The notes under the pieces are model-generated. The model was not told the DNA's origin. It did not search any database and saw only the letters and a program-made list of their open reading frames with translations. A stretch of 64,000 bases of DNA, from sequence record NC_061444.1; one strand, 5' to 3'. Positions 10,049 through 53,501 of the stretch are shown here, piece after piece. The position numbers and the translations under genes are program-made. Each line of letters opens with the position of its first letter. Within the stretch, counting starts at the first letter, position 1.

Positions 10049-10126
10049 ACGTCTGATCGACCTGAAAAGTGACTGTGACTTAGCTCAAATTGAATCGACC
10101 TACGATCTGCGAAGTCTGCAAATAAC

Positions 10127-10171: not shown

Positions 10172-10224
10172 ATATGCAGACGCTACACGACGTAGCACAT
10201 ACAACTAATGCTGAGGAGCATACA

Positions 10225-42785: not shown

Positions 42786-42846
42786 GCAATAACGAGCAGG
42801 GGGCTGAAATATAGCTGCCCTGCTATCTGCGAAGTATGCAGAAATC

Positions 42847-42891
42847 TGGACAAAATCGTGGTTGCTATCTGAAAGCGACCTATGCTATAAT
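42847..42891 (+). promoter_or_regulatory. phage promoter cassette copy 10
   Basis: TGGACAAAAT at 42847; TGC-TATAAT at 42886 (39 nt offset). Confidence 0.9.
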
Positions 42892-42948
42892 AGATACAGA
42901 CGCAATAGTGCGTCACAAACAAAACACATATACTGAGGAGTATTAATC

Positions 42949-44550
42949 ATGGCACGTATCGAAACTAACTCTAACCTGGTTGGCAAAACTATCATCCTGC
43001 TGAACGGCACCAAATCTAAAATCGAAGATGCTATCGCGTCCGGCTACAAGGTGAAAGGTCAGAGCAAACGTATCGCAACCCGCTGTGTTATCAAAGAGGG
43101 ATCTCACTTCCGTGAAATCGAGCGCATGAACATGAGCCAGCTTGAAGATACCGGCGAAGGTTACGTCAAGCTGAAAGAAGCGAAAGCGTCCGTCAAGAAA
43201 ACTACCGGCAAGAAAGACGCAGTGAAAGAGAAAGCGCCTAAGACTTCTGGTAAGAAGACTGGCGGCAAAGTCTCGAAAGAGAAAGAACCGAAAGTTCGTC
43301 GTAAATCTTCCGAAGAGCAGTCCGAAGATTATCAGAATCTGGCACACGCTATCATCAAAGGCGGCAAAGCTAAACCCGCAGTTGAAATCGAAACTGTAGA
43401 TGAAGCGCTGACCGATACTGTGGCAAAACGTCTGGTGGCGCTGCTTGAAAACAGCGAAATTGCGAAAGTGTGTGCAGACAACAAAACGCCGATCGCTAAC
43501 GCTGTGTCTGTTGCTTACGGTGCTGAGTACGCCGAAGAGAACAACACAATGCAGATCACGTTGAGCCTGCAATACGCGAAGCCTGTGAAAGACACTGCTG
43601 TTGCTCCTGAGCTGGATGAAGCTGTTGCGAAACGTGCCGCCAAGCTCGCGTCTAAGAAGATTGGCAAAGTGCTGGCGAAAGCAATCAAAGCTGCGTTCGA
43701 CCTCGAAGATGCGAACGACCTGCTGCCGGGCACTGTACTGACTTCTGACGGTGCTGAGTTCGTGTTCGTGGGTGAGTCTGCGAAACACGCTGGCAAAGCG
43801 CTGATGTATAGCGCAGACACTGATAGCTTCAAATCATTCGGCGCCGACAAGCTGTCCGACTTCGAAATCGTCGCTGATGAAAGCGAAGAAGAAGAGGAAG
43901 AAGTCGAAGAAGAGGAAGAAGAAGTCGAGGAGGAAGAGGAAGAAGAAGAAGCCGAAGAAGAAGAAGACGGCGAAGAAGAAGACGGCGAAGAAGAAGAAGG
44001 CGATACGCAAGAATACGAGTTCGTTGCTGTCGAAGCGGAACAACTCGAACTGGTCAACAAGAAAGTGACCGCTAAGTATCACGCTGCACTCGCCGAACGT
44101 TTCGGTGTAGACGAAGAAGCGCTTGCCCCTGGCCTGATGCTGACTGACGGCGATACGACTTTTGCTTACCTGGGCTGCGATAGCAAAGGCGGGCTGCTGG
44201 TAATCGACGTTGACGCAGAAGACGAAGACGACAACGTTCTGGTCTACAGCAAAGCTGATATCAAAACGCTGACCGACTTTAGCCCTGTGATCGATAGCGG
44301 CGAAAGCGAAGAAGACGCCGAAGAAGAAGACGGCGAAGAAGAAGAAGATAACAACGTTGACTTCGAAGACGAAGAGGGTGAAGAAGAAGAAGACGAAGAA
44401 GAAGACTTCGAATTTGACGACGCACCAACCGAAGACCTCGAAGACCTGACCGAAGACGAACTGCGTGATCGCGCTGTTGAAGCTGGTCTGACTACGCCGC
44501 GCAAAGCAGACAAAATGACTGCTGCCCAGCTGCGTAAACTCCTGAAGTAA
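42949..44550 (+). CDS. multidomain protein: SH3-like N-domain, Lys-rich linker, two repeated modules separated by poly-Glu, C-terminal HeH-like domain (533 aa)
   Basis: TGAGGAG SD; repeats L.PG..LT.....F..(V/L)G; LEDLTEDELRDRAVEAGL. Confidence 0.9.
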   Translation: MARIETNSNLVGKTIILLNGTKSKIEDAIASGYKVKGQSKRIATRCVIKEGSHFREIERMNMSQLEDTGEGYVKLKEAKASVKKTTGKKDAVKEKAPKTSGKKTGGKVSKEKEPKVRRKSSEEQSEDYQNLAHAIIKGGKAKPAVEIETVDEALTDTVAKRLVALLENSEIAKVCADNKTPIANAVSVAYGAEYAEENNTMQITLSLQYAKPVKDTAVAPELDEAVAKRAAKLASKKIGKVLAKAIKAAFDLEDANDLLPGTVLTSDGAEFVFVGESAKHAGKALMYSADTDSFKSFGADKLSDFEIVADESEEEEEEVEEEEEEVEEEEEEEEAEEEEDGEEEDGEEEEGDTQEYEFVAVEAEQLELVNKKVTAKYHAALAERFGVDEEALAPGLMLTDGDTTFAYLGCDSKGGLLVIDVDAEDEDDNVLVYSKADIKTLTDFSPVIDSGESEEDAEEEDGEEEEDNNVDFEDEEGEEEEDEEEDFEFDDAPTEDLEDLTEDELRDRAVEAGLTTPRKADKMTAAQLRKLLK

Positions 44551-44636
44551 TCTGTCGTAACACTGTAACACTGAAACAAGATGCGGTTCATACGGAGCCG
44601 CATCTCTGACAACTAAGCTGATTGAGGAATCACACT

Positions 44637-45872
44637 ATGTCAAACGCAAATGCAAACCTGTTGAATGCCCGTGTTCGTCGTCTGGACGGTACTATCACTT
44701 TCATCAACAAAGTGAACGCTAATGGTTATAGCACCGACGCGAAAGGTCCGCAAATTCCAGTTAGGCGTATCGTGCTTGCGGGCAAAACGCTGAAAGAGAT
44801 TGAAGCGCCGTTAGCGAAAGCTGAACACGTTCTGATTGACGGTATCACTGTGAAACTGAACAAGCGCCAGCAGAAAGACTTGCTCAACGACGAGATCGAC
44901 CTCGACACGATCAAGCCAGACTTTAGCTCTCTGGTGTATATTGACCCTGAGACAGGCAAGCCTGCTGCTGTGAAAGCTGCGAAGCAGAAAGGCGGTGTGA
45001 AAGCGACACGCGAACGCAACAAAGACACTCGCTCTAAGAAAGAGCGTAAAGCAGAAGTCGCCGCGTCTAAAGACGAAATCGACATGCTGCCGTCTGATAA
45101 AGTTGATCGCAAAGCTGAACTGGCGGGCATCATCGACGCAACCATCGCCGACGCGACTACGAAAGACCGTCGCAAGATGTTGAGCGAAGCGTTTGACATG
45201 GACTGGAAAGATGTGAAGAAGCATGGCGGTAAGGGTGTGATTAAGCACATGGGACGCAAAGCTGCACAATCTGCCATGAACAAACTGAACGCGACCGTGA
45301 CGCAAGACACGTTCATCAAGCAGATGCCTATCGCGCTGAAACGTCTGATTCAAGACGGTGCGTTGACGCTGAACAAAGCGCAGATTGAGCGCGTACTGAG
45401 TGCGCTTGACCTCGACGTGAAATTCTACGACGTTGCGATGCAAACGCTGCTGGGTAATCTCAAGCTGTCACTCGACAAATCTATTGAGAACCCGAAAGTG
45501 AAAGAGAAGAAAGCGAAGCGCAAACTTGCTGTGCCGACCTACGCTTCTGAGAAAGAACAGACCAAGCGTGTGCGCAAAATGACTATCAAACTCATTAAGC
45601 CGCCTAAGAAAGAAATGGCCGCAGCGAAAGCGCACATAAAAGAATCGAAAGCAATCATCGCCAAGAAGCTGGGCATTGCACCTGCTGATGTGAAGCGTGG
45701 TCTGCTCTGCTATAAACCGAACGGTGTTGAACTGATGTTCGTCGCGTGTGACATGACCGGCCCTGTCTTCATCGAGAAAGACGGTAGCGAATGCGTAATG
45801 GCACATGCCAACGTGCAAGACACCTTCAACCTGACCTTGGGTACTAACTCTGAACTGGATGCTGCTGTATGA
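44637..45872 (+). CDS. Lys-rich paralog of 42949-44550 (411 aa)
   Basis: GAGGA SD; shared N-terminal L.GT...I....A.GY........I..R.....G....EIE and one C-terminal module. Confidence 0.9.
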   Translation: MSNANANLLNARVRRLDGTITFINKVNANGYSTDAKGPQIPVRRIVLAGKTLKEIEAPLAKAEHVLIDGITVKLNKRQQKDLLNDEIDLDTIKPDFSSLVYIDPETGKPAAVKAAKQKGGVKATRERNKDTRSKKERKAEVAASKDEIDMLPSDKVDRKAELAGIIDATIADATTKDRRKMLSEAFDMDWKDVKKHGGKGVIKHMGRKAAQSAMNKLNATVTQDTFIKQMPIALKRLIQDGALTLNKAQIERVLSALDLDVKFYDVAMQTLLGNLKLSLDKSIENPKVKEKKAKRKLAVPTYASEKEQTKRVRKMTIKLIKPPKKEMAAAKAHIKESKAIIAKKLGIAPADVKRGLLCYKPNGVELMFVACDMTGPVFIEKDGSECVMAHANVQDTFNLTLGTNSELDAAV

Positions 45873-46252
45873 CAAATAACGAAATCCTTTTGTCAGGCAT
45901 GTTTGCTCAACTCTACGCGCGGCTGTTAACAGCCGCAGTATTGAAGACCCACGTGTTCTACTCTGACTTAGCGCCGATTGTGTTCGGCGTTCAACTGTCT
46001 GTGATTAGTAGTGCGCAGTACGATGCGCTGTGGGGATTAGTGCGCGAAACCATGCGTGTCGATATATCGCATGGCAGACCACCGCTTGCTGCACTGTATG
46101 TATCACGGGCCACCGATAGTAAACTGCCCGCTAAGAAATTCTTTCGTGAGTACCACAAGCTCACGGGCAAGCATTTGTCAGAAACTGAATGGCAAGCACT
46201 CGTCGAAAATGTGTGGAACAGCTATGCACCAAATCTTCGGGAGCCATCATGA
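45869..46252 (+). CDS. putative winged-helix (ATL/MGMT-like) DNA-binding protein
   Basis: VFYSDLA...RPPLAALYV....LP.K.FF pattern. Confidence 0.5.
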   Translation: MTNNEILLSGMFAQLYARLLTAAVLKTHVFYSDLAPIVFGVQLSVISSAQYDALWGLVRETMRVDISHGRPPLAALYVSRATDSKLPAKKFFREYHKLTGKHLSETEWQALVENVWNSYAPNLREPS

Positions 46253-46710
46253 AAAAGTCAAAAGTAGTAATTAGTCGCGGCGGCTACAGGCCGTCATCGC
46301 AAGAAGAAGCACAAAAGCTGATAGCTGAATTTATTCTTGGTACTATCGGCGTTGACCCTACTGTTATCAGTCAGCAAATGCTGTTGAACATTGCTAACTA
46401 TAATTACCTGACGTCTATCGCAGACACTGGCAAAGCAAATGCAGCGAACCAAGCTGCGTTGCACAAAACTGTAAAAGAACTTAATGCGTTCTGTAGAATG
46501 CACAAGATATCGCTGGGTTTACTAATTATGCCCCATACTTCTGCTAGTGATTATGCTGGCGACGAGGTTGTAGCGATTCCTTGGGAGCATGTGCAGAAAA
46601 ACGCATTGAGCCAGTCGGCCATCGACTCCCTGTTCAAAACAGTTGAAGCAGATGGTTACCCGCAGTTTGTGACTGATGCGAAAACAGTAGAGGGATACAA
46701 TGTTTTATGA
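46249..46710 (+). CDS. hypothetical protein (153 aa)
   Basis: GGGAG SD; ATGA overlap. Confidence 0.8.
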   Translation: MKKSKVVISRGGYRPSSQEEAQKLIAEFILGTIGVDPTVISQQMLLNIANYNYLTSIADTGKANAANQAALHKTVKELNAFCRMHKISLGLLIMPHTSASDYAGDEVVAIPWEHVQKNALSQSAIDSLFKTVEADGYPQFVTDAKTVEGYNVL

Positions 46711-47980
46711 TCATGTATTCAGCCACGACGAGAAGCAATTGCTCTTGTCAGTGGCTGAGTCTAAATATTTGGTGAGACTTGACTGCCCCGATTATTTGAA
46801 GAAGTCTAAACACGCGATTGAGATTCGCCACACTGTGACGAACCGTGGTGAGCAACGTCGTACTGGTACGATAACAACTGCGTTCGTACCGCGTATTCAT
46901 TCTGCGACTGTGCAGCGCCTTGTGCGTGATGTGCGTGACTCTGCAACAAAGAGTTCGTCTGACAGTCTCGCTGCGTTGTTTGAGCTTGGCCTTGGTGTGC
47001 CGAAGCAACACGATATCGCAGTGTACCTGAAAGACTACTCGCGTGAGAACGATAAGAAGGGTGTGGGTATCAAGTATATCCGCAAACTGATTAACGAATA
47101 TCACCGCAAGCATCGTCATAGCTTCGCCGGTAGTCGCTGGCTGATGCCCGCTGCGTACACTGCGAACATGCTCAACATGCAATCTTTCATTCATCTGAAA
47201 GAAGACGGCTACTCGAAGAAACTGAAAGTTCCTGAAGGTGTGCCTGTCGTGTTCATCTACCAGAACACGAATCATGAAAAAGCAACGTTCACGATGTGCG
47301 ACGCATTCATGATAAGCCCGCTCGGTTATCCGATGCCGTTTGCGCAGGTAGCGTTACGACCTGAGTTCAAAGCTGCACCGAAAGAGTTCAAGTCGAAAGC
47401 GCTGCGTGGCAAAAGCATGTACGCTATGGTCATGGGCATTGTCTACTGGGAAGAAGGAAGTGCAATTGACAACTTCCGTGAGTTGCAAGCAATCGACGAC
47501 GACCCGTATCTGACGCTGCTTAGTGACGAGAAGTACGCAGACCGCCGCTCACCTGAGTATCAAGAGCTGCTGGACAAACGTGCTGAACTGAACGAGCGAG
47601 CGAAACACTGGAACGAGATCGTATCGAAGTATGGCAAGACAACGCGCACTCTCAAACCCGAACAAGCGGAGAAGTTAGAGAAAGCTGAGGCGTTCTTCAA
47701 AGAGCGCAAAGAGTTCATGGACGACTTCGACAAGTTCGAAAAGAAAGAAAACCACAAAGCTGCGAAGAAGTTCGCTGCTGCGAAAGCGCTGTTTGCTGCT
47801 GTCGATTGTGGCACTATCATGGACCGCACCACGTACATGTCAGTGTCGTCTGGGCTTGACGATGTGAATAAGATACTCACTACGTGGGGATTCACGACCG
47901 TCAATACTGTTAATGCTAGTTTGAAGAAGTCTATCCTTACATACGACCGTAAAAACGCAAGCCGCGTCTGGTCTCTGTAA
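46700..47980 (+). CDS. hypothetical basic protein (426 aa)
   Basis: GAGGG SD; long ORF. Confidence 0.9.
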   Translation: MFYDHVFSHDEKQLLLSVAESKYLVRLDCPDYLKKSKHAIEIRHTVTNRGEQRRTGTITTAFVPRIHSATVQRLVRDVRDSATKSSSDSLAALFELGLGVPKQHDIAVYLKDYSRENDKKGVGIKYIRKLINEYHRKHRHSFAGSRWLMPAAYTANMLNMQSFIHLKEDGYSKKLKVPEGVPVVFIYQNTNHEKATFTMCDAFMISPLGYPMPFAQVALRPEFKAAPKEFKSKALRGKSMYAMVMGIVYWEEGSAIDNFRELQAIDDDPYLTLLSDEKYADRRSPEYQELLDKRAELNERAKHWNEIVSKYGKTTRTLKPEQAEKLEKAEAFFKERKEFMDDFDKFEKKENHKAAKKFAAAKALFAAVDCGTIMDRTTYMSVSSGLDDVNKILTTWGFTTVNTVNASLKKSILTYDRKNASRVWSL

Positions 47981-48007: not shown

Positions 48008-51000
48008 ATGTCAAATAACAATCTGGGCGCTGCATCATCATTTGGTTCCGAAACACAAAAGCAGATCAGCGACGAACAGCGTCGTGCTAATTCTGCCGAA
48101 AGCGGTCGTGTGAACAAATGCACAATCGTCGTCCTGACTTCACTGAATGCTCATGGTCGCTTCTCGTATATGAGCGCCGACGAGCAACTGCACGAAAAGC
48201 AGATTGAAGGCAAGGTAATGGATCGTCTGCCGAGCCTGATCGAACGTGCCTCTGGTCAGTCTACCGATCAGAACAGCGCGTACTACATCCTGCACCCTAA
48301 CAACGGTGTGCCGACTCGCATTGACGAGCGCATCAAAGTGGGTGAAGGTGATGCCGTCATCGTTTCATATACTGTAAATAAAGCAGTATCTGAGATGCAC
48401 GGTAGTCTGTCTCTCGCACTGTTTAGTGCAGGCGAAAGCGATCTGTCAGACTTGGCAGCCGAGTTTGGGATTCACTCAATCTCGATTGTTGAAGAAAGCA
48501 AAGCAGGTACTTACATTCAGGCACTCGCCGCTCAGGTGGAAGCTCTGCAAACTGTAAATATCACAAGCATTGATGAAACTGATGGTGCTCTCGATAAAGC
48601 GGTAATTGACTACAGCGCGTTGCCAGCTAACCCTGTTACTGTGCTGTCTGGTGCTGTGCGTACTTTCATCATGCAAACTATTAGCAGCGAGATCGTTGCT
48701 GCAATTCCAAATAACGGAGAACTGAACGTGAAACAACCTACCAACGCAACGCCTGTAAACCTGAGCGAAGACTTCGACGCAGAAGACGAAGTTGTTGATC
48801 AGCAGGAAGCGGGTGACGAAGAAGAAGTTGCGACCGGCACTGACCTGTTCGGCTACAAAGCTGAAACGCTGTCTGTTGAGCAAATGACCGAAGCGCTCGA
48901 AGCGATTGGTTATGATCTGACTGCAATGAACGAAGACGGTATTCGTGAGTCGTTCGACACCGAGCAAGCAATCTGGCTGGAAAAAGGCGATGCCGGTCAG
49001 AGCGACGATGACGCAGAAGACGAAGAAGAAGACGACGAAGAAGAAAGCGAAGGCTTCGACGCTGTTCAATTCCTCGCTTCTGTTCTGGTCTCCGAAGAAC
49101 TGGATCGTACCGGTCTGAAAATTCTTGTTCGCACCCAGGATCTGAAAGTCATGAAGTCTGATACTGTCGAGACTCTGACTGCCAAACTGCTGGAGCTGGT
49201 TGAAGGTGCGACCGAAGAAGAGATGATCGAAACTCTGAACACCTTCGTTGGCGCTCTGCAAGAGCACGAAATCGACTGCCCGAACATGCTGGCAGCTCTG
49301 CCGTCTGATGAAGACGAAGAAGAAGAAGACGACGCCGACGAAGAAGACGGCGAAGAAGAAGAGGACGAAGACGATTCTGAGGAGGAAGATGAAGACTCCG
49401 AAGAAGAGGAAGAGTCCGAAGAAGAAACCGACGAAGTGCAAGACCAGATCGATGCAGTAACTGATCCGCTTGACTACTTCCAGTTCACCGGCGGTGTGCT
49501 GACTGCTGAACAACGTGCCGCCGCTGTTGAAGCGATGGGCGAAGATGTATCTGCAATGTCTATCGTTCAGGTAATGAAAGCGTTCACCCGCATTCAAAGC
49601 CAGACCAGCCCTATCGCTGTTGAAGAAGACACTGACGTGACTTCTAACGAAGACGAACTCCGCGCTCTGCTGTCTCAGTACGACGAAGCGACCGTGCAGC
49701 ACGTAGCTGAAAGCCTGGGCATCCTCGTTGACGAAAGCGAAACTGTTGACGACATGATCGAAGCGATCCTCAACGGTGGTAGCGAAGACGACTTTGCTGC
49801 TGTCGAAGAAATCGCAACTAACTACGGTATCGACCTGTCCGAAGTTGCAGACGGTGAAGACCTGGACTTTGTTGACGCGCTGCTGGCCGTACTCCCTGCG
49901 TTCCTGAACGACGACGAAGTTGCCGATCAGGATGAAGACGAAGAAGAAGACGCCGAAGAGAGCGAAGACGAAGAAGCAGAAGAAGCAGACGTTAGTGCTG
50001 TTGCTGAAAACGATCATCTGAAATTCGTCAAAACTGTTGACACCACCAATCGCGTTGGCCCGATGCTGACTGTCGATATGGACCAGACGCTGATCATCAA
50101 CTTCACTCTGACCGACGGCAACACGTACTCGCCGATTGAAAGCGAACTGTCTGACATTAACGGCTTCAACTACCGCTACCCGTTCAACCTGGGCAAAGCT
50201 GGTAAAGCGCCAGGCGCGATGCACCTGCCAGCGCAGTCTCTGCTGGATATCATTGAGCGCACCAGCACTACGCGCTTCATGGCAGACCCGAAAACGTTCG
50301 ACGTTGCTGCCTGGGCTGAAAGCCTTGAGCAAACTCTTGAAGAAGAAATCTCTGCTTCTCTGTACGCCGGCCGTATCGAAGAAGGCATGGACCCAAGCGA
50401 AGCGGGTCTCGTAGTTGGTGACTTCATCGACGACGAAGAAATGCAGCAAGCGAGCGAGCTGGGTTATCTCGACGAAGATCAGTTCGCAGAAATGCAGGGC
50501 GATCATCTGCCGATTGCAAGCCTGTACAACGCTAAGTCTCGCGTTCGTCCTGTTCAGGTTGACACTGCACACGTTGCGCTGCACACCACTGTGATGAACG
50601 TTGCTGTCCCTGGCTTCTGGGGTGACTCCGATGTTTCTCTGCTGGTGCAAGCCGCTGTTAATCGTGTTATCGCTCTGGCCGGTACCGTTGAAGGTATCAA
50701 AGTGTACGCAGGCTTCACTCTGGAATCCGCAGCACTGCTGAACAACGACCGCCTGTACGATGCACTGACCGCGCTGCGCACTATGGAAGGCGTACAGTCT
50801 TACTCTGCCGCTGACGCTGCAAACTTCGACGATGCCGAAGACGTGATCGAAGTAGCAAGTGCTCTCGACACCCGCGACCTGCCGCTGTCTATTCTGTCTG
50901 GTGGTCTGGCTGCTGCAACGTTCGACAATGGCGGTGACCTGACTGTTCTGGTACTGTGTTCTCCTCAGGAAGAAGAATCCGAAGAGAACGAAGACGAAGA

Positions 51001-51016
51001 CGGCGAAGACGAGTAA
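48008..51016 (+). CDS. very acidic 1002-aa protein with several HeH-like repeats
   Basis: TGAGGAG SD; poly-D/E runs; LSQYDEATVQHVAESLGI...DDMIEAIL and ELDRTGLKILVRTQDL...ETLTAKLL. Confidence 0.92.
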   Translation: MSNNNLGAASSFGSETQKQISDEQRRANSAESGRVNKCTIVVLTSLNAHGRFSYMSADEQLHEKQIEGKVMDRLPSLIERASGQSTDQNSAYYILHPNNGVPTRIDERIKVGEGDAVIVSYTVNKAVSEMHGSLSLALFSAGESDLSDLAAEFGIHSISIVEESKAGTYIQALAAQVEALQTVNITSIDETDGALDKAVIDYSALPANPVTVLSGAVRTFIMQTISSEIVAAIPNNGELNVKQPTNATPVNLSEDFDAEDEVVDQQEAGDEEEVATGTDLFGYKAETLSVEQMTEALEAIGYDLTAMNEDGIRESFDTEQAIWLEKGDAGQSDDDAEDEEEDDEEESEGFDAVQFLASVLVSEELDRTGLKILVRTQDLKVMKSDTVETLTAKLLELVEGATEEEMIETLNTFVGALQEHEIDCPNMLAALPSDEDEEEEDDADEEDGEEEEDEDDSEEEDEDSEEEEESEEETDEVQDQIDAVTDPLDYFQFTGGVLTAEQRAAAVEAMGEDVSAMSIVQVMKAFTRIQSQTSPIAVEEDTDVTSNEDELRALLSQYDEATVQHVAESLGILVDESETVDDMIEAILNGGSEDDFAAVEEIATNYGIDLSEVADGEDLDFVDALLAVLPAFLNDDEVADQDEDEEEDAEESEDEEAEEADVSAVAENDHLKFVKTVDTTNRVGPMLTVDMDQTLIINFTLTDGNTYSPIESELSDINGFNYRYPFNLGKAGKAPGAMHLPAQSLLDIIERTSTTRFMADPKTFDVAAWAESLEQTLEEEISASLYAGRIEEGMDPSEAGLVVGDFIDDEEMQQASELGYLDEDQFAEMQGDHLPIASLYNAKSRVRPVQVDTAHVALHTTVMNVAVPGFWGDSDVSLLVQAAVNRVIALAGTVEGIKVYAGFTLESAALLNNDRLYDALTALRTMEGVQSYSAADAANFDDAEDVIEVASALDTRDLPLSILSGGLAAATFDNGGDLTVLVLCSPQEEESEENEDEDGEDE

Positions 51017-52700: not shown

Positions 52701-53501
52701 ATGGCTAAAGCTGCTAAAGCAACCGTTAACACCGCATCTCTGGTTCTGGCTAAAATGCTGGGTGTCGTAGTAGAGAACGCAACCGACAAAGAAATCGCTG
52801 CGCTGCTCGCATCTGCCGGTCTGACCGTGTCTGGTGGTAAAGTTGTTAAAGCTGACAAAGGCGGTAAAGCTGCTAAAGGCAAAAAGGCCAAAGCACCTAC
52901 CGTCGCTGAAATCGTCGCTGCTGTGAAGGACGAAGAAGAACTGGACATCTCCGGCGTTGACGAAGACACCCTGCGTGAAGCGGTTGTCAAAGCCAAACTG
53001 TCTACCGCCAAGAAAGCTAAAGCGCTGGACGAAGAAGAACTGCGCGAACTGCTGAACGACAACCTGGGCGGCGAGTCCGAAGAGGACGAAGACGACGAAG
53101 AAGAAGAGGACGAAGACGAGGACGAAGAGTCAGAAGACGAAGACGGCGACGACGAAGACGAAGACGACGAAGACTCTGATGATGAAGAAGAGGACGACGA
53201 AGACGACGAAGACGGCGACGACGAAGATGAAGACGACGAAGACGAAGATGAAGACGAGGACGAAGATGAAGACGAGGATGATGAAGACCTCGATCTCGAC
53301 TCCCTCGACGAAGACGAACTTCGCGCTCTGGTAATCGAACACAAGCTGGCCGCCGCTAAAAAGGCGAAGAAAATGGACGAAGATGAACTGCGCGAACTCT
53401 GCGAAGAACACTTCGGTGGTGAAGACGACGAAGACGACGAAGACGAAGACGAAGACGACGAAGACTTCGACGACGAAGACGAAGACGAAGACGACGAGTA
53501 A
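52701..53501 (+). CDS. hyperacidic protein with two HeH-like domains separated by ~70-residue poly-D/E run (266 aa)
   Basis: AGGA SD; ISGVDEDTLREAVVKAKL...LDEEELRELL and LDSLDEDELRALVIEHKL...MDEDELRELC. Confidence 0.9.
   Translation: MAKAAKATVNTASLVLAKMLGVVVENATDKEIAALLASAGLTVSGGKVVKADKGGKAAKGKKAKAPTVAEIVAAVKDEEELDISGVDEDTLREAVVKAKLSTAKKAKALDEEELRELLNDNLGGESEEDEDDEEEEDEDEDEESEDEDGDDEDEDDEDSDDEEEDDEDDEDGDDEDEDDEDEDEDEDEDEDEDDEDLDLDSLDEDELRALVIEHKLAAAKKAKKMDEDELRELCEEHFGGEDDEDDEDEDEDDEDFDDEDEDEDDE

Follow-up and report, generated by a model that had tools for sequence, protein, structure and literature searches.

Tandem Paralogs of Opposite Charge, gp318 and gp319, in a Jumbo Erwinia Phage: Domain Maps, Conservation and a Putative Nucleic-Acid-Associated Role

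We describe two adjacent genes, gp318 (MPK67_gp318, 533 amino acids, aa) and gp319 (MPK67_gp319, 411 aa), in a 64,000-nucleotide stretch of the genome of Erwinia phage pEa_SNUABM_32 (Alexandravirus; NC_061444.1, genome of 265,891 bp). This stretch is referred to as the window, and its position 1 corresponds to genome position 201,892. Both products are annotated as “hypothetical protein,” and by sequence comparison the two are true paralogs that go back to one ancient tandem duplication. They differ in the sign of their charge, with a net charge of −76 and an isoelectric point (pI) of 4.3 for gp318 and a net charge of +24 and a pI of 9.7 for gp319. They are charge-patterned proteins that may be associated with nucleic acid and are built of domains that appear to be specific to their phage clade.

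Results

The initial annotation of the window had proposed that the N-terminal domains (N-domains) of two successive open reading frames (ORFs) align, and that a C-terminal module occurs twice in the first and once in the second. Both ORFs exist as described (Table 1), and both similarities were recovered. The N-domains of gp318 and gp319 share 31% identity over 52 residues in BLASTP (expectation value, E, of 2e-5), and comparison by hhalign of the whole family alignments (23 relatives of gp318 and 25 of gp319, taken from a word-index search) finds the same N-terminal stretch with a probability of 93.6% and an E of 2e-7. When the alignments are cut to the N-domains, the probability is 95.8% and the E 8e-9, with a shared part of about 55 residues. 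For the module, copy A of gp318 (residues 215–306) matches copy B (352–447) with a probability of 95% and an E of 4e-8, and copy B in turn matches the C-terminus of gp319 (296–411) with a probability of 88% and an E of 2.8e-6. The direct match of copy A to the C-terminus of gp319 is weak (33%, E 4.5e-4), which makes the link between these two a transitive one. Hidden Markov models (HMMs) of the shared pieces, run against all 3,016 six-frame ORFs of the phage, have N-domain or module matches in gp318 and gp319 only, and the middle domains of the two proteins are unrelated (no profile match in hhalign).

Chance likeness between spurious or compositionally biased ORFs is refuted as an explanation. 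The long low-complexity tracts of both proteins may inflate similarity scores, but the matched parts are folded and unbiased, their profile E values lie at 1e-6 to 1e-8 vs. 0.14–0.5 in the controls (5 unrelated domain pairs in hhalign, E 0.14–0.48), and the structure models are confident in the matched modules. Both genes are moreover kept in relatives from 98% to about 35% identity under purifying selection, with ratios of nonsynonymous to synonymous substitution rates (dN/dS) of 0.13–0.29.

No prior description of the two proteins was found in the searchable literature or in the curated family libraries. Over their full lengths gp318 (residues 1–532, E 3e-203) and gp319 (residues 1–411, E 3e-141) match PHROG 33433 and PHROG 32501, respectively, both of unknown function; since the two are filed under separate PHROGs, their paralogy is unrecorded there. 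Pfam, NCBIfam and PADLOC have no match at or near threshold for gp318, gp319 or eight separate domain pieces, and for gp318 no Pfam family appears at an E of up to 1. In the searchable literature on Alexandravirus, AD1, Y3, hairy Myoviridae, jumbo-phage SAP domains and acidic early proteins, no description of either protein was found. The two PHROGs, so far unconnected and unnamed, can now be linked and domain-mapped.

The opposite charge of the tandem paralogs and the Lys-rich character of gp319, with its Lys-rich disordered linkers, also stand as first described. The statement that gp318 embeds its modules in poly-Glu holds for the two acidic tracts (net −37 and −32), but to take the protein as uniformly acidic would be wrong, as a Lys-rich linker of net +11 follows the N-domain. 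A simple acidic protein is therefore not what we observe: gp318 is a block polyampholyte, with a basic block ahead of the acidic blocks. Linker charge in gp318 is kept at +8 to +14 across the family while its sequence varies, and the charged tracts of both families behave in the same way, their net charge being conserved as sequence and length drift. In both paralogs conservation is by far highest in the N-domain; in gp318 this is also the slowest-evolving part, with a dN of 0.01–0.05 relative to the closer relatives and 0.13 relative to the most distant one compared.

Structure models were made with AlphaFold2 from the family alignments, for full-length chains only, and reach a mean predicted local distance difference test score (pLDDT) of 75 for gp319 and 63.5 for gp318. 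The model of gp318 places a disordered linker at residues 77–141, an alpha+beta middle domain at 150–212, module A at 224–305, the poly-Glu tract at 310–353, module B at 363–440, the second acidic tract at 450–491 and a three-helix motif at 502–532. In gp319 the N-region has strands within 11–54, followed by 64–73 and a helix, and the C-terminal module consists of a long helix (324–345) and strands within 356–387. The domain maps that follow from alignments, models and charge are collected in Table 1, together with the expression signals around the two genes.

Table 1. Features of the gp318–gp319 locus (window positions; res, residues; nt, nucleotides).
Feature	Position	Strand	Basis and remarks
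GC-rich hairpin after gp317, probably terminator of the upstream unit	42796..42823	+	sequence; kept in relatives with other stem bases (GCAGGG/CCCTGC vs. GCAGGC/GCCTGC)
gp318 promoter	42841..42891	+	upstream element GAAATCTGGACAAAAT 42841–42856; −35 TTGCTA 42862–42867; 18-nt spacer; extended −10 TGcTATAAT, −10 at 42886–42891
gp318 5'-untranslated region (5'-UTR) stem-loop GACGCA-ATAG-TGCGTC	42899..42914	+	just 3' of −10; read from sequence
gp318 hairpin ATACT-GAGG-AGTAT	42930..42943	+	Shine-Dalgarno in loop, 5-bp stem; nearly invariant in relatives
gp318, acidic paralog	42949..44550	+	533 aa; PHROG 33433; dN/dS 0.15–0.29 vs. relatives
gp318 N-domain, res 1–75, common to gp319	42949..43173	+	BLASTP, hhalign; low model confidence
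gp318 Lys/Ala/Pro-rich disordered linker, res 76–125	43174..43323	+	net +11; pLDDT < 50
gp318 middle alpha+beta domain, res 126–214, absent from gp319	43324..43590	+	helix 152–168, strands 185–195, 200–210; fold matches weak, Z up to 4.7
gp318 module copy A, res 215–305	43591..43863	+	helices and small beta-barrel; hhalign, model
gp318 poly-Glu tract 1, res 306–354	43864..44010	+	net −37; family range −18 to −45
gp318 module copy B, res 355–445	44011..44283	+	hhalign, model
gp318 acidic tract 2, res 446–495	44284..44433	+	net −32; family range −21 to −44
gp318 C-terminal three-helix SAP/LEM-like (helix-extension-helix) motif, res 496–533	44434..44547	+	helices 502–511, 517–521, 525–532; pLDDT ~85
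gp318–gp319 intergenic hairpin	44580..44604	+	10-bp stem, 5-nt loop; no U-tract in pEa_SNUABM_32
gp319, basic paralog	44637..45872	+	411 aa; PHROG 32501; dN/dS 0.13–0.25
gp319 N-region, res 1–100	44637..44936	+	shared beta-rich domain (~5–58), extra hairpin and helix; pLDDT 74–88
gp319 Lys-rich disordered linker 1, res 101–155	44937..45101	+	model, charge
gp319 helical middle domain, res 156–280, absent from gp318	45102..45476	+	generic helical-bundle matches only, Z up to 5.4
gp319 Lys-rich linker 2, res 281–330	45477..45626	+	net +12; model, charge
gp319 C-terminal module, res 331–411, homologous to gp318 copy B	45627..45869	+	hhalign, model

The longest ORF of gp319 begins at a TTG (44622), whereas annotation and conservation both point to the ATG at 44637. 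The C-terminal motif of gp318 stays below the Pfam gathering cut-offs of both families that it resembles (SAP PF02037, 19.1 bits vs. 23.9, E 0.001, with only 13 residues covered; LEM PF03020, 10.6 bits vs. 24, E 0.44). Among 15 family members, sub-threshold matches to SAP occur in 8 and to LEM in 6. Residues E21, L22, G30, L31, L45, L48 and L49 (motif numbering) are invariant in the family, and the motif recurs in the hyper-acidic protein gp326 (HMM E 1.5e-7, with a PHROG cross-match). In the gp318 ortholog of a 222-kb metagenomic phage contig (L022:4174-5928) it occurs twice, at residues 312–357 in the gap between module A and the acidic tract and again at the C-terminus, which suggests a mobile unit within the family. 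A SAP-like motif that we had suspected in the middle domain of gp319 (LTLNKAQIERVLSALDLD) was rejected on profile comparison with the gp318 motif (E 0.27). Several gp319 orthologs (L030 and L031, from pEa_SNUABM_17 and pEa_SNUABM_1, as well as P0066 and P0068) are longer, at 465–481 aa, because some 60 residues are inserted behind Lys-rich linker 1, in what looks like a partial duplication of the helical middle domain (...AKRADAAKAFGMLWKDLK...).

Structural searches place the module nearest to helix-capped small barrels, the predicted topology being a small barrel of five strands with one or two helices ahead of it. The matches in a wide search are the N-terminal region of GatD (Z-score, Z, of 5.8), beta domains of the MscS type (Z 5.4, 5.1, and 4.7), CarD (Z 4.8), the capped Tudor domain of Sds3 (7sxi, Z 4.6 and 4.3), Mfd (Z 4.6) and the C-terminal domain of UvrD (Z 4.6). 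By calibration of the search, a Z below about 8 may reflect a mere common arrangement, so the matches speak for a topology rather than a function. In a direct test for a Tudor/SH3-like barrel the topology of the module fits, with best values (Z 5.8, 5.4, and 4.7) below that reliability level, and the likeness to the helix-capped Tudor/SH3-like barrels of Sds3, MscS (cytoplasmic beta domain), CarD, Mfd and UvrD, at Z 4.0–5.8 and 5–16% identity, implies no function. Nearest to the gp319 N-domain are PRC barrels over about 55 residues (MTH1859, 1pm3_A, Z 3.6; 8onw_D, Z 3.5; PRC1/PRC2 of A. fulgidus, Z 3.5), with no Pfam match. Foldseek has no match in the PDB at an E of up to 0.001, sequence-profile searches of the PDB give chance-level rows only (uL24, E 0.03; designed “Pizza” proteins; an acidic repeat of NusA, E 0.02), and the ESM Atlas gives no usable neighbor for gp319 or for residues 126–305 of gp318.

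The word-index search finds 34 clusters for gp318 and 42 for gp319, and an HMM search with the gp319 profile in 1.84 billion cluster representatives returns 18 matches, 17 of them credible and one an artefact of TPR-like repeats. The contigs of family members that were examined are phage-like, and tblastn matches in the phage collection are confined to jumbo phages of Erwinia and Dickeya and one of Yersinia. The clade concerned is that of the “hairy” jumbo myoviruses of about 220–270 kb (Alexandravirus, Y3, Yoloswag, the Dickeya JA-type and metagenomic relatives). The protein family varies in architecture: there are acidic forms with a single module (P0089 and P0091), basic forms of the JA-type without a module (N-domain and helical domain, about 310 aa) and basic forms of about 255 aa with N-domain, coiled coil and module. 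A metagenomic phage contig encodes a stand-alone module of 112 aa (L024:1516-1854, E 3e-17 to the HMM of the gp319 module), separated by 14 nt from a GyrB-like topoisomerase II gene downstream of it.

In a maximum-likelihood tree of the N-domain (first 85 residues, 37 proteins) the acidic proteins separate from the basic ones in two clades (96/94 support), with the acidic forms of a single module basal on their side, which argues for one duplication before the divergence of these lineages. All 16 of the related loci have the same order, an acidic protein (−56 to −83), a basic protein (+24 to +34) and two small near-neutral genes, and further downstream a basic protein of about 426 aa and a hyper-acidic protein of about 1,000 aa. 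The distant contigs L021 and L022 likewise keep the order of the genes and the signs of their charge. Two deeper contigs carry the acidic gene and directly after it the counterpart of gp322, with no basic paralog between them. Pseudomonas phage PaBG may be a like case. A direct search of its genome with both family profiles found nothing; its gp131 is a 440-aa protein of acidic composition (net −59) that matches gp318 in Foldseek (E 8.5e-5) and, at the equivalent N-terminal position, in hhalign (E 7e-4), and the downstream gene order is alike. We tentatively regard gp131 as the PaBG counterpart of gp318. Whatever its function, the pair makes a clean natural experiment in which, after one duplication, opposite charge signs were held through the divergence of genera while the sequences of the charged tracts drifted freely.

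The two genes lie among genes of DNA metabolism (replication and recombination), some 10 kb ahead of topoisomerase II and well apart from the structural genes, within an acidic/basic island of about 14 kb in which, by a table of net charges, gp323 (−192) and gp326 (−99) are acidic and gp325 and gp327 basic. Upstream of gp318 is a predicted promoter of the sigma-70 type with 10 of 12 consensus matches plus the TG, whose layout is kept in 15 related loci. Its upstream element GAAATCTGGACAAAAT has 5 copies in the 266-kb genome, all within window positions 10122–42842, and three of the five precede genes of the acidic island (gp311, gp316, and gp318). As a class, these promoters (window 10122, 27382, 39110, 41353, and 42842, plus strand) read CTGGACAAAAT, 4–5 nt, a TTGyTA-like −35, about 18 nt and an extended −10 TGnTAyAAT, and in several of them the spacer contains an inverted repeat, imperfect and with arms that vary from one copy to the next.

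The leader of gp318 contains two hairpins. The stem of the 5'-UTR stem-loop is, judged by eye, kept through paired changes in relatives (GGTGC/GCACC, TCGAGC/GCTCG, TTGAGC/GCTCAA). From the Shine-Dalgarno hairpin through the ATG there are at most 3 differences, all of them 3' of the hairpin, in 16 of 16 loci, including those whose proteins have only about 40% identity, and this hairpin could be a translational operator. A covarying hairpin of the same kind (ATGCT-GAGG-AGCAT, window 10208–10221) stands before a small acidic gene that has a promoter of this class upstream. The hairpin between gp318 and gp319 is conserved as well (85.7% of cells paired vs. at most 49% in slid controls), with 5 of its 10 pairs changing on both sides. 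The stop codon of gp319 overlaps the start of gp320 (ATGA), and gp320, gp321 and gp322 overlap in turn. Given its own promoter and hairpin for gp318 and the overlaps from gp319 to gp322, gp318 would be regulated somewhat apart from the genes that follow.

Discussion

Our favored, and still tentative, reading is that gp318 and gp319 are an early- or middle-expressed pair associated with nucleic acid or the nucleoid. We lean to it because of the Lys/Ala/Pro-rich linkers in both proteins, the SAP/LEM-like end of gp318, the setting among replication genes and the charge-block layout of gp318. The linkers sit directly after the N-domain in both paralogs and are of the DNA-binding kind seen in linker histones and in the tails of bacterial histone-like proteins. 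The predicted promoter, with its extended −10 kept in relatives, and the stand-alone module just ahead of a topoisomerase II gene in another phage contig speak for it as well. In such a scheme the Lys-rich disordered linkers of gp319 would coat or bridge DNA, and gp318 would attach through its own linker and its C-terminal motif. The poly-Glu tracts of gp318 would then be a DNA-like competitor that folds back on basic segments, be they in gp318 itself, in gp319 or in further basic proteins encoded by the island, and this fold-back may tune or chaperone the binding of DNA. By way of their common N-domain and modules, the two proteins would reach one and the same partner or form mixed oligomers.

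The initial annotation had offered either an acidic/basic heteromeric pair or a DNA-binder with a built-in antagonist. The former gains from the conserved pairing, and the latter seems to fit the layout of gp318 itself (a basic block ahead of acidic ones) no less well than the pair. Archaeal CdpB1/CdpB2 (PDB 8qzo, 8onw) are a precedent for pairing between small-barrel paralogs and, together with MTH1859 (1pm3), the best structural neighbors of the gp319 N-domain; the values (Z 2.8–3.6 over 54–57 residues) are at noise level, with no sequence signal.

Several points weigh against the favored reading. No domain of gp318 or gp319 reaches the curated threshold of any DNA-binding family in the sequence searches, the fold matches of the predicted structures are all weak and generic (Z up to 5.8), and Lys-rich and Glu-rich disorder is common to proteins of many functions. 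The promoter of gp318 is assigned to the sigma-70 type by consensus only, and gp319 is, by its overlapping reading frames, translationally coupled to gp320–322 and not to gp318. The deeper lineages seem to carry the acidic form only; if these relatives manage with the acidic protein alone, the partnership with gp319 cannot be the ancestral mechanism. As judged from gene content and order, both the acid-only lineages and the coupling of gp319 to gp320–322, with gp318 standing apart, count against an obligate heteromer of gp318 and gp319.

Eukaryotic chromatin offers close analogies. Nucleophosmin and nucleoplasmin are acidic-tract chaperones, the acidic tail of HMGB1 is autoinhibitory, and linker histone H1 pairs with prothymosin-alpha. 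In the favored reading gp318 would act like such a chaperone or tail, and gp319 would be its basic partner in the manner of a linker histone. The order of parts in gp318 is like that of nucleophosmin/nucleoplasmin (a beta-rich N-terminal domain, long poly-Asp/Glu tracts alternating with a basic tract, a small helical motif of a nucleic-acid-binding type at the C-terminus), and the proposed action is alike, acidic tracts vying with nucleic acid for basic proteins. It differs in being a phage protein with two extra beta-barrel modules and in its N-domain of about 55–75 residues, which is poorly modeled. The nucleoplasmin core domain, a pentameric beta-sandwich, was not found in gp318, neither among Pfam families at an E of up to 1 nor as a chain among the fold matches. 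Poly-acidic tracts, which in such chaperones bind basic proteins, are present in gp318 with conserved charge. With HMGB1 and H1/prothymosin-alpha the phage proteins have in common that basic and poly-acidic disordered segments stand in one chain (gp318) or in two partners (gp319 and gp318) and that charge rather than sequence is kept, but they are without an HMG box or histone fold, and, unlike the members of those pairs, they are each other's paralogs. Common descent with nucleophosmin/nucleoplasmin, HMGB1 or linker histones appears unsupported. If the favored reading is true, the pair would be a phage analog of the eukaryotic pairing of a basic chromatin protein with an acidic chaperone, made from domains found nowhere else, and could shed light on how a genome of a quarter megabase is handled in the cell by jumbo phages that have no phage nucleus.

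A role of gp318 in host takeover or anti-defence, which we consider unlikely, would make it a poly-anionic decoy (a disordered DNA mimic) for HU, H-NS, restriction enzymes, defence nucleases or RNA polymerase, with gp319 acting separately on the host nucleoid and the shared domains reflecting descent only. An early-type promoter with a strong ribosome-binding site and extreme negative charge in long tracts would suit such a protein. The known mimics Ocr and ArdA are folded, with patterned surface charge, and are not poly-Glu coils. No DNA-mimic family (Ocr, ArdA and alike) matches in Pfam, functional PHROGs, NCBIfam or PADLOC, and gp318 itself has no match in PADLOC, a library with few anti-defence proteins, nor in Pfam or NCBIfam. 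Acidic phage early proteins that mimic DNA are known, SPO1 Gp44 being one that acts against RNA polymerase (PMC8208478), and gp318 resembles T7 Ocr and Gp44 in its inferred early expression and strong negative net charge and could likewise occupy DNA-binding sites. Relative to these two its charge lies in disordered poly-Glu tracts rather than on a folded, DNA-shaped surface, and it has basic and SAP-like parts of its own, needless for a pure decoy, as well as a basic paralog partner. The module does recall Tudor-like domains that bind RNA polymerase (CarD, Mfd and the UvrD C-terminal domain), but at noise level, and the stable, syntenic conservation in single copy is unlike the fast turnover typical of anti-defence genes.

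We also give a low probability to the alternative that the two proteins do not bind each other and are adaptors, with homologous N-domains that would dock on one common partner from phage or host (e.g., a component of the replisome, of recombination or of transcription) and bring opposite disordered regions to it, maybe at different times or in competition. Conservation of the N-domain is what a docking surface would be expected to show, and the plastic architecture behind it, with basic forms that have or lack the module or the middle domain, agrees with this, as do the separate transcription and translation signals of gp318 and the coupling of gp319 to gp320–322. The assignment of the N-domain as PRC-barrel-like is weak (Z up to 3.6), and the long retention of opposite charge is left unexplained by simple docking.

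An extension of the favored reading to the whole island is, in our view, quite improbable. Here the pair together with gp323, gp325, gp326 and gp327 would make up a phage chromatin-like or condensate system, whose block-charged acidic and basic paralogs would coacervate on phage DNA and set up a replication compartment in jumbo phages without a chimallin nucleus, and in which gp318 would be a nucleophosmin-like scaffold or chaperone and gp319 its linker-histone-like partner.

Also improbable, in our view, is that the island proteins are internal virion proteins that are loaded into the capsid with the DNA, to be ejected or to act as packing spacers. Phage T4 packages internal proteins and acidic internal peptides in its capsid, and the island has several extremely charged proteins, of which gp325 and gp326 stand behind a motif (GAAATCTGTAAATA) that is like the T4 late promoter (TATAAATA) and has 15 copies in the genome. 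The gene for gp318, in contrast, is under the sigma-70-type promoter class and not under this motif, and the genes sit with those of replication, at a distance from the structural module. In PaBG, the tentative counterpart gp131 is missing from the 14 virion proteins of Table 1 of PMC7412058; as this list covers abundant bands only, the absence of gp131 is weak evidence.

Neighboring Genes and Other Motifs

The motif GAAATCTGTAAATA, or (G)AAATCTGTAAAta in its other form, resembles the T4 late promoter at 15 genome sites on both strands when at most 1 mismatch is allowed. Five of the sites of (G)AAATCTGTAAAta are in the window (6006, 51901, 52585, 52642, and 59387) and 10 further ones lie across the genome. 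Most of the start codons that it precedes are 20–100 nt downstream of it; it stands before gp325 and before gp326 (twice), and not before gp318 or gp319. It is probably the target of a sigma-like factor of the phage's own.

The genes gp320, gp321 and gp322 (window 45869–47980) have the same order in all relatives and no family assignment, and a basic protein of about 420 aa like gp322 follows the acidic gene even in lineages without gp319. The next protein, gp323 (window 48008–51016, 1,002 aa, net −192), has several acidic tracts split by short helical motifs, L(S/T)xEQxxxAxEAxGxD, that resemble the C-terminal motif of gp318 by eye, though the HMM of the gp318 motif did not detect them. The protein gp326 (window 52701–53501, 266 aa) has 47% Asp+Glu, a net charge of −99 and an acidic run of 24, and it is flanked on both sides by basic proteins, gp325 (pI 10.1) and gp327 (30% Lys+Arg).

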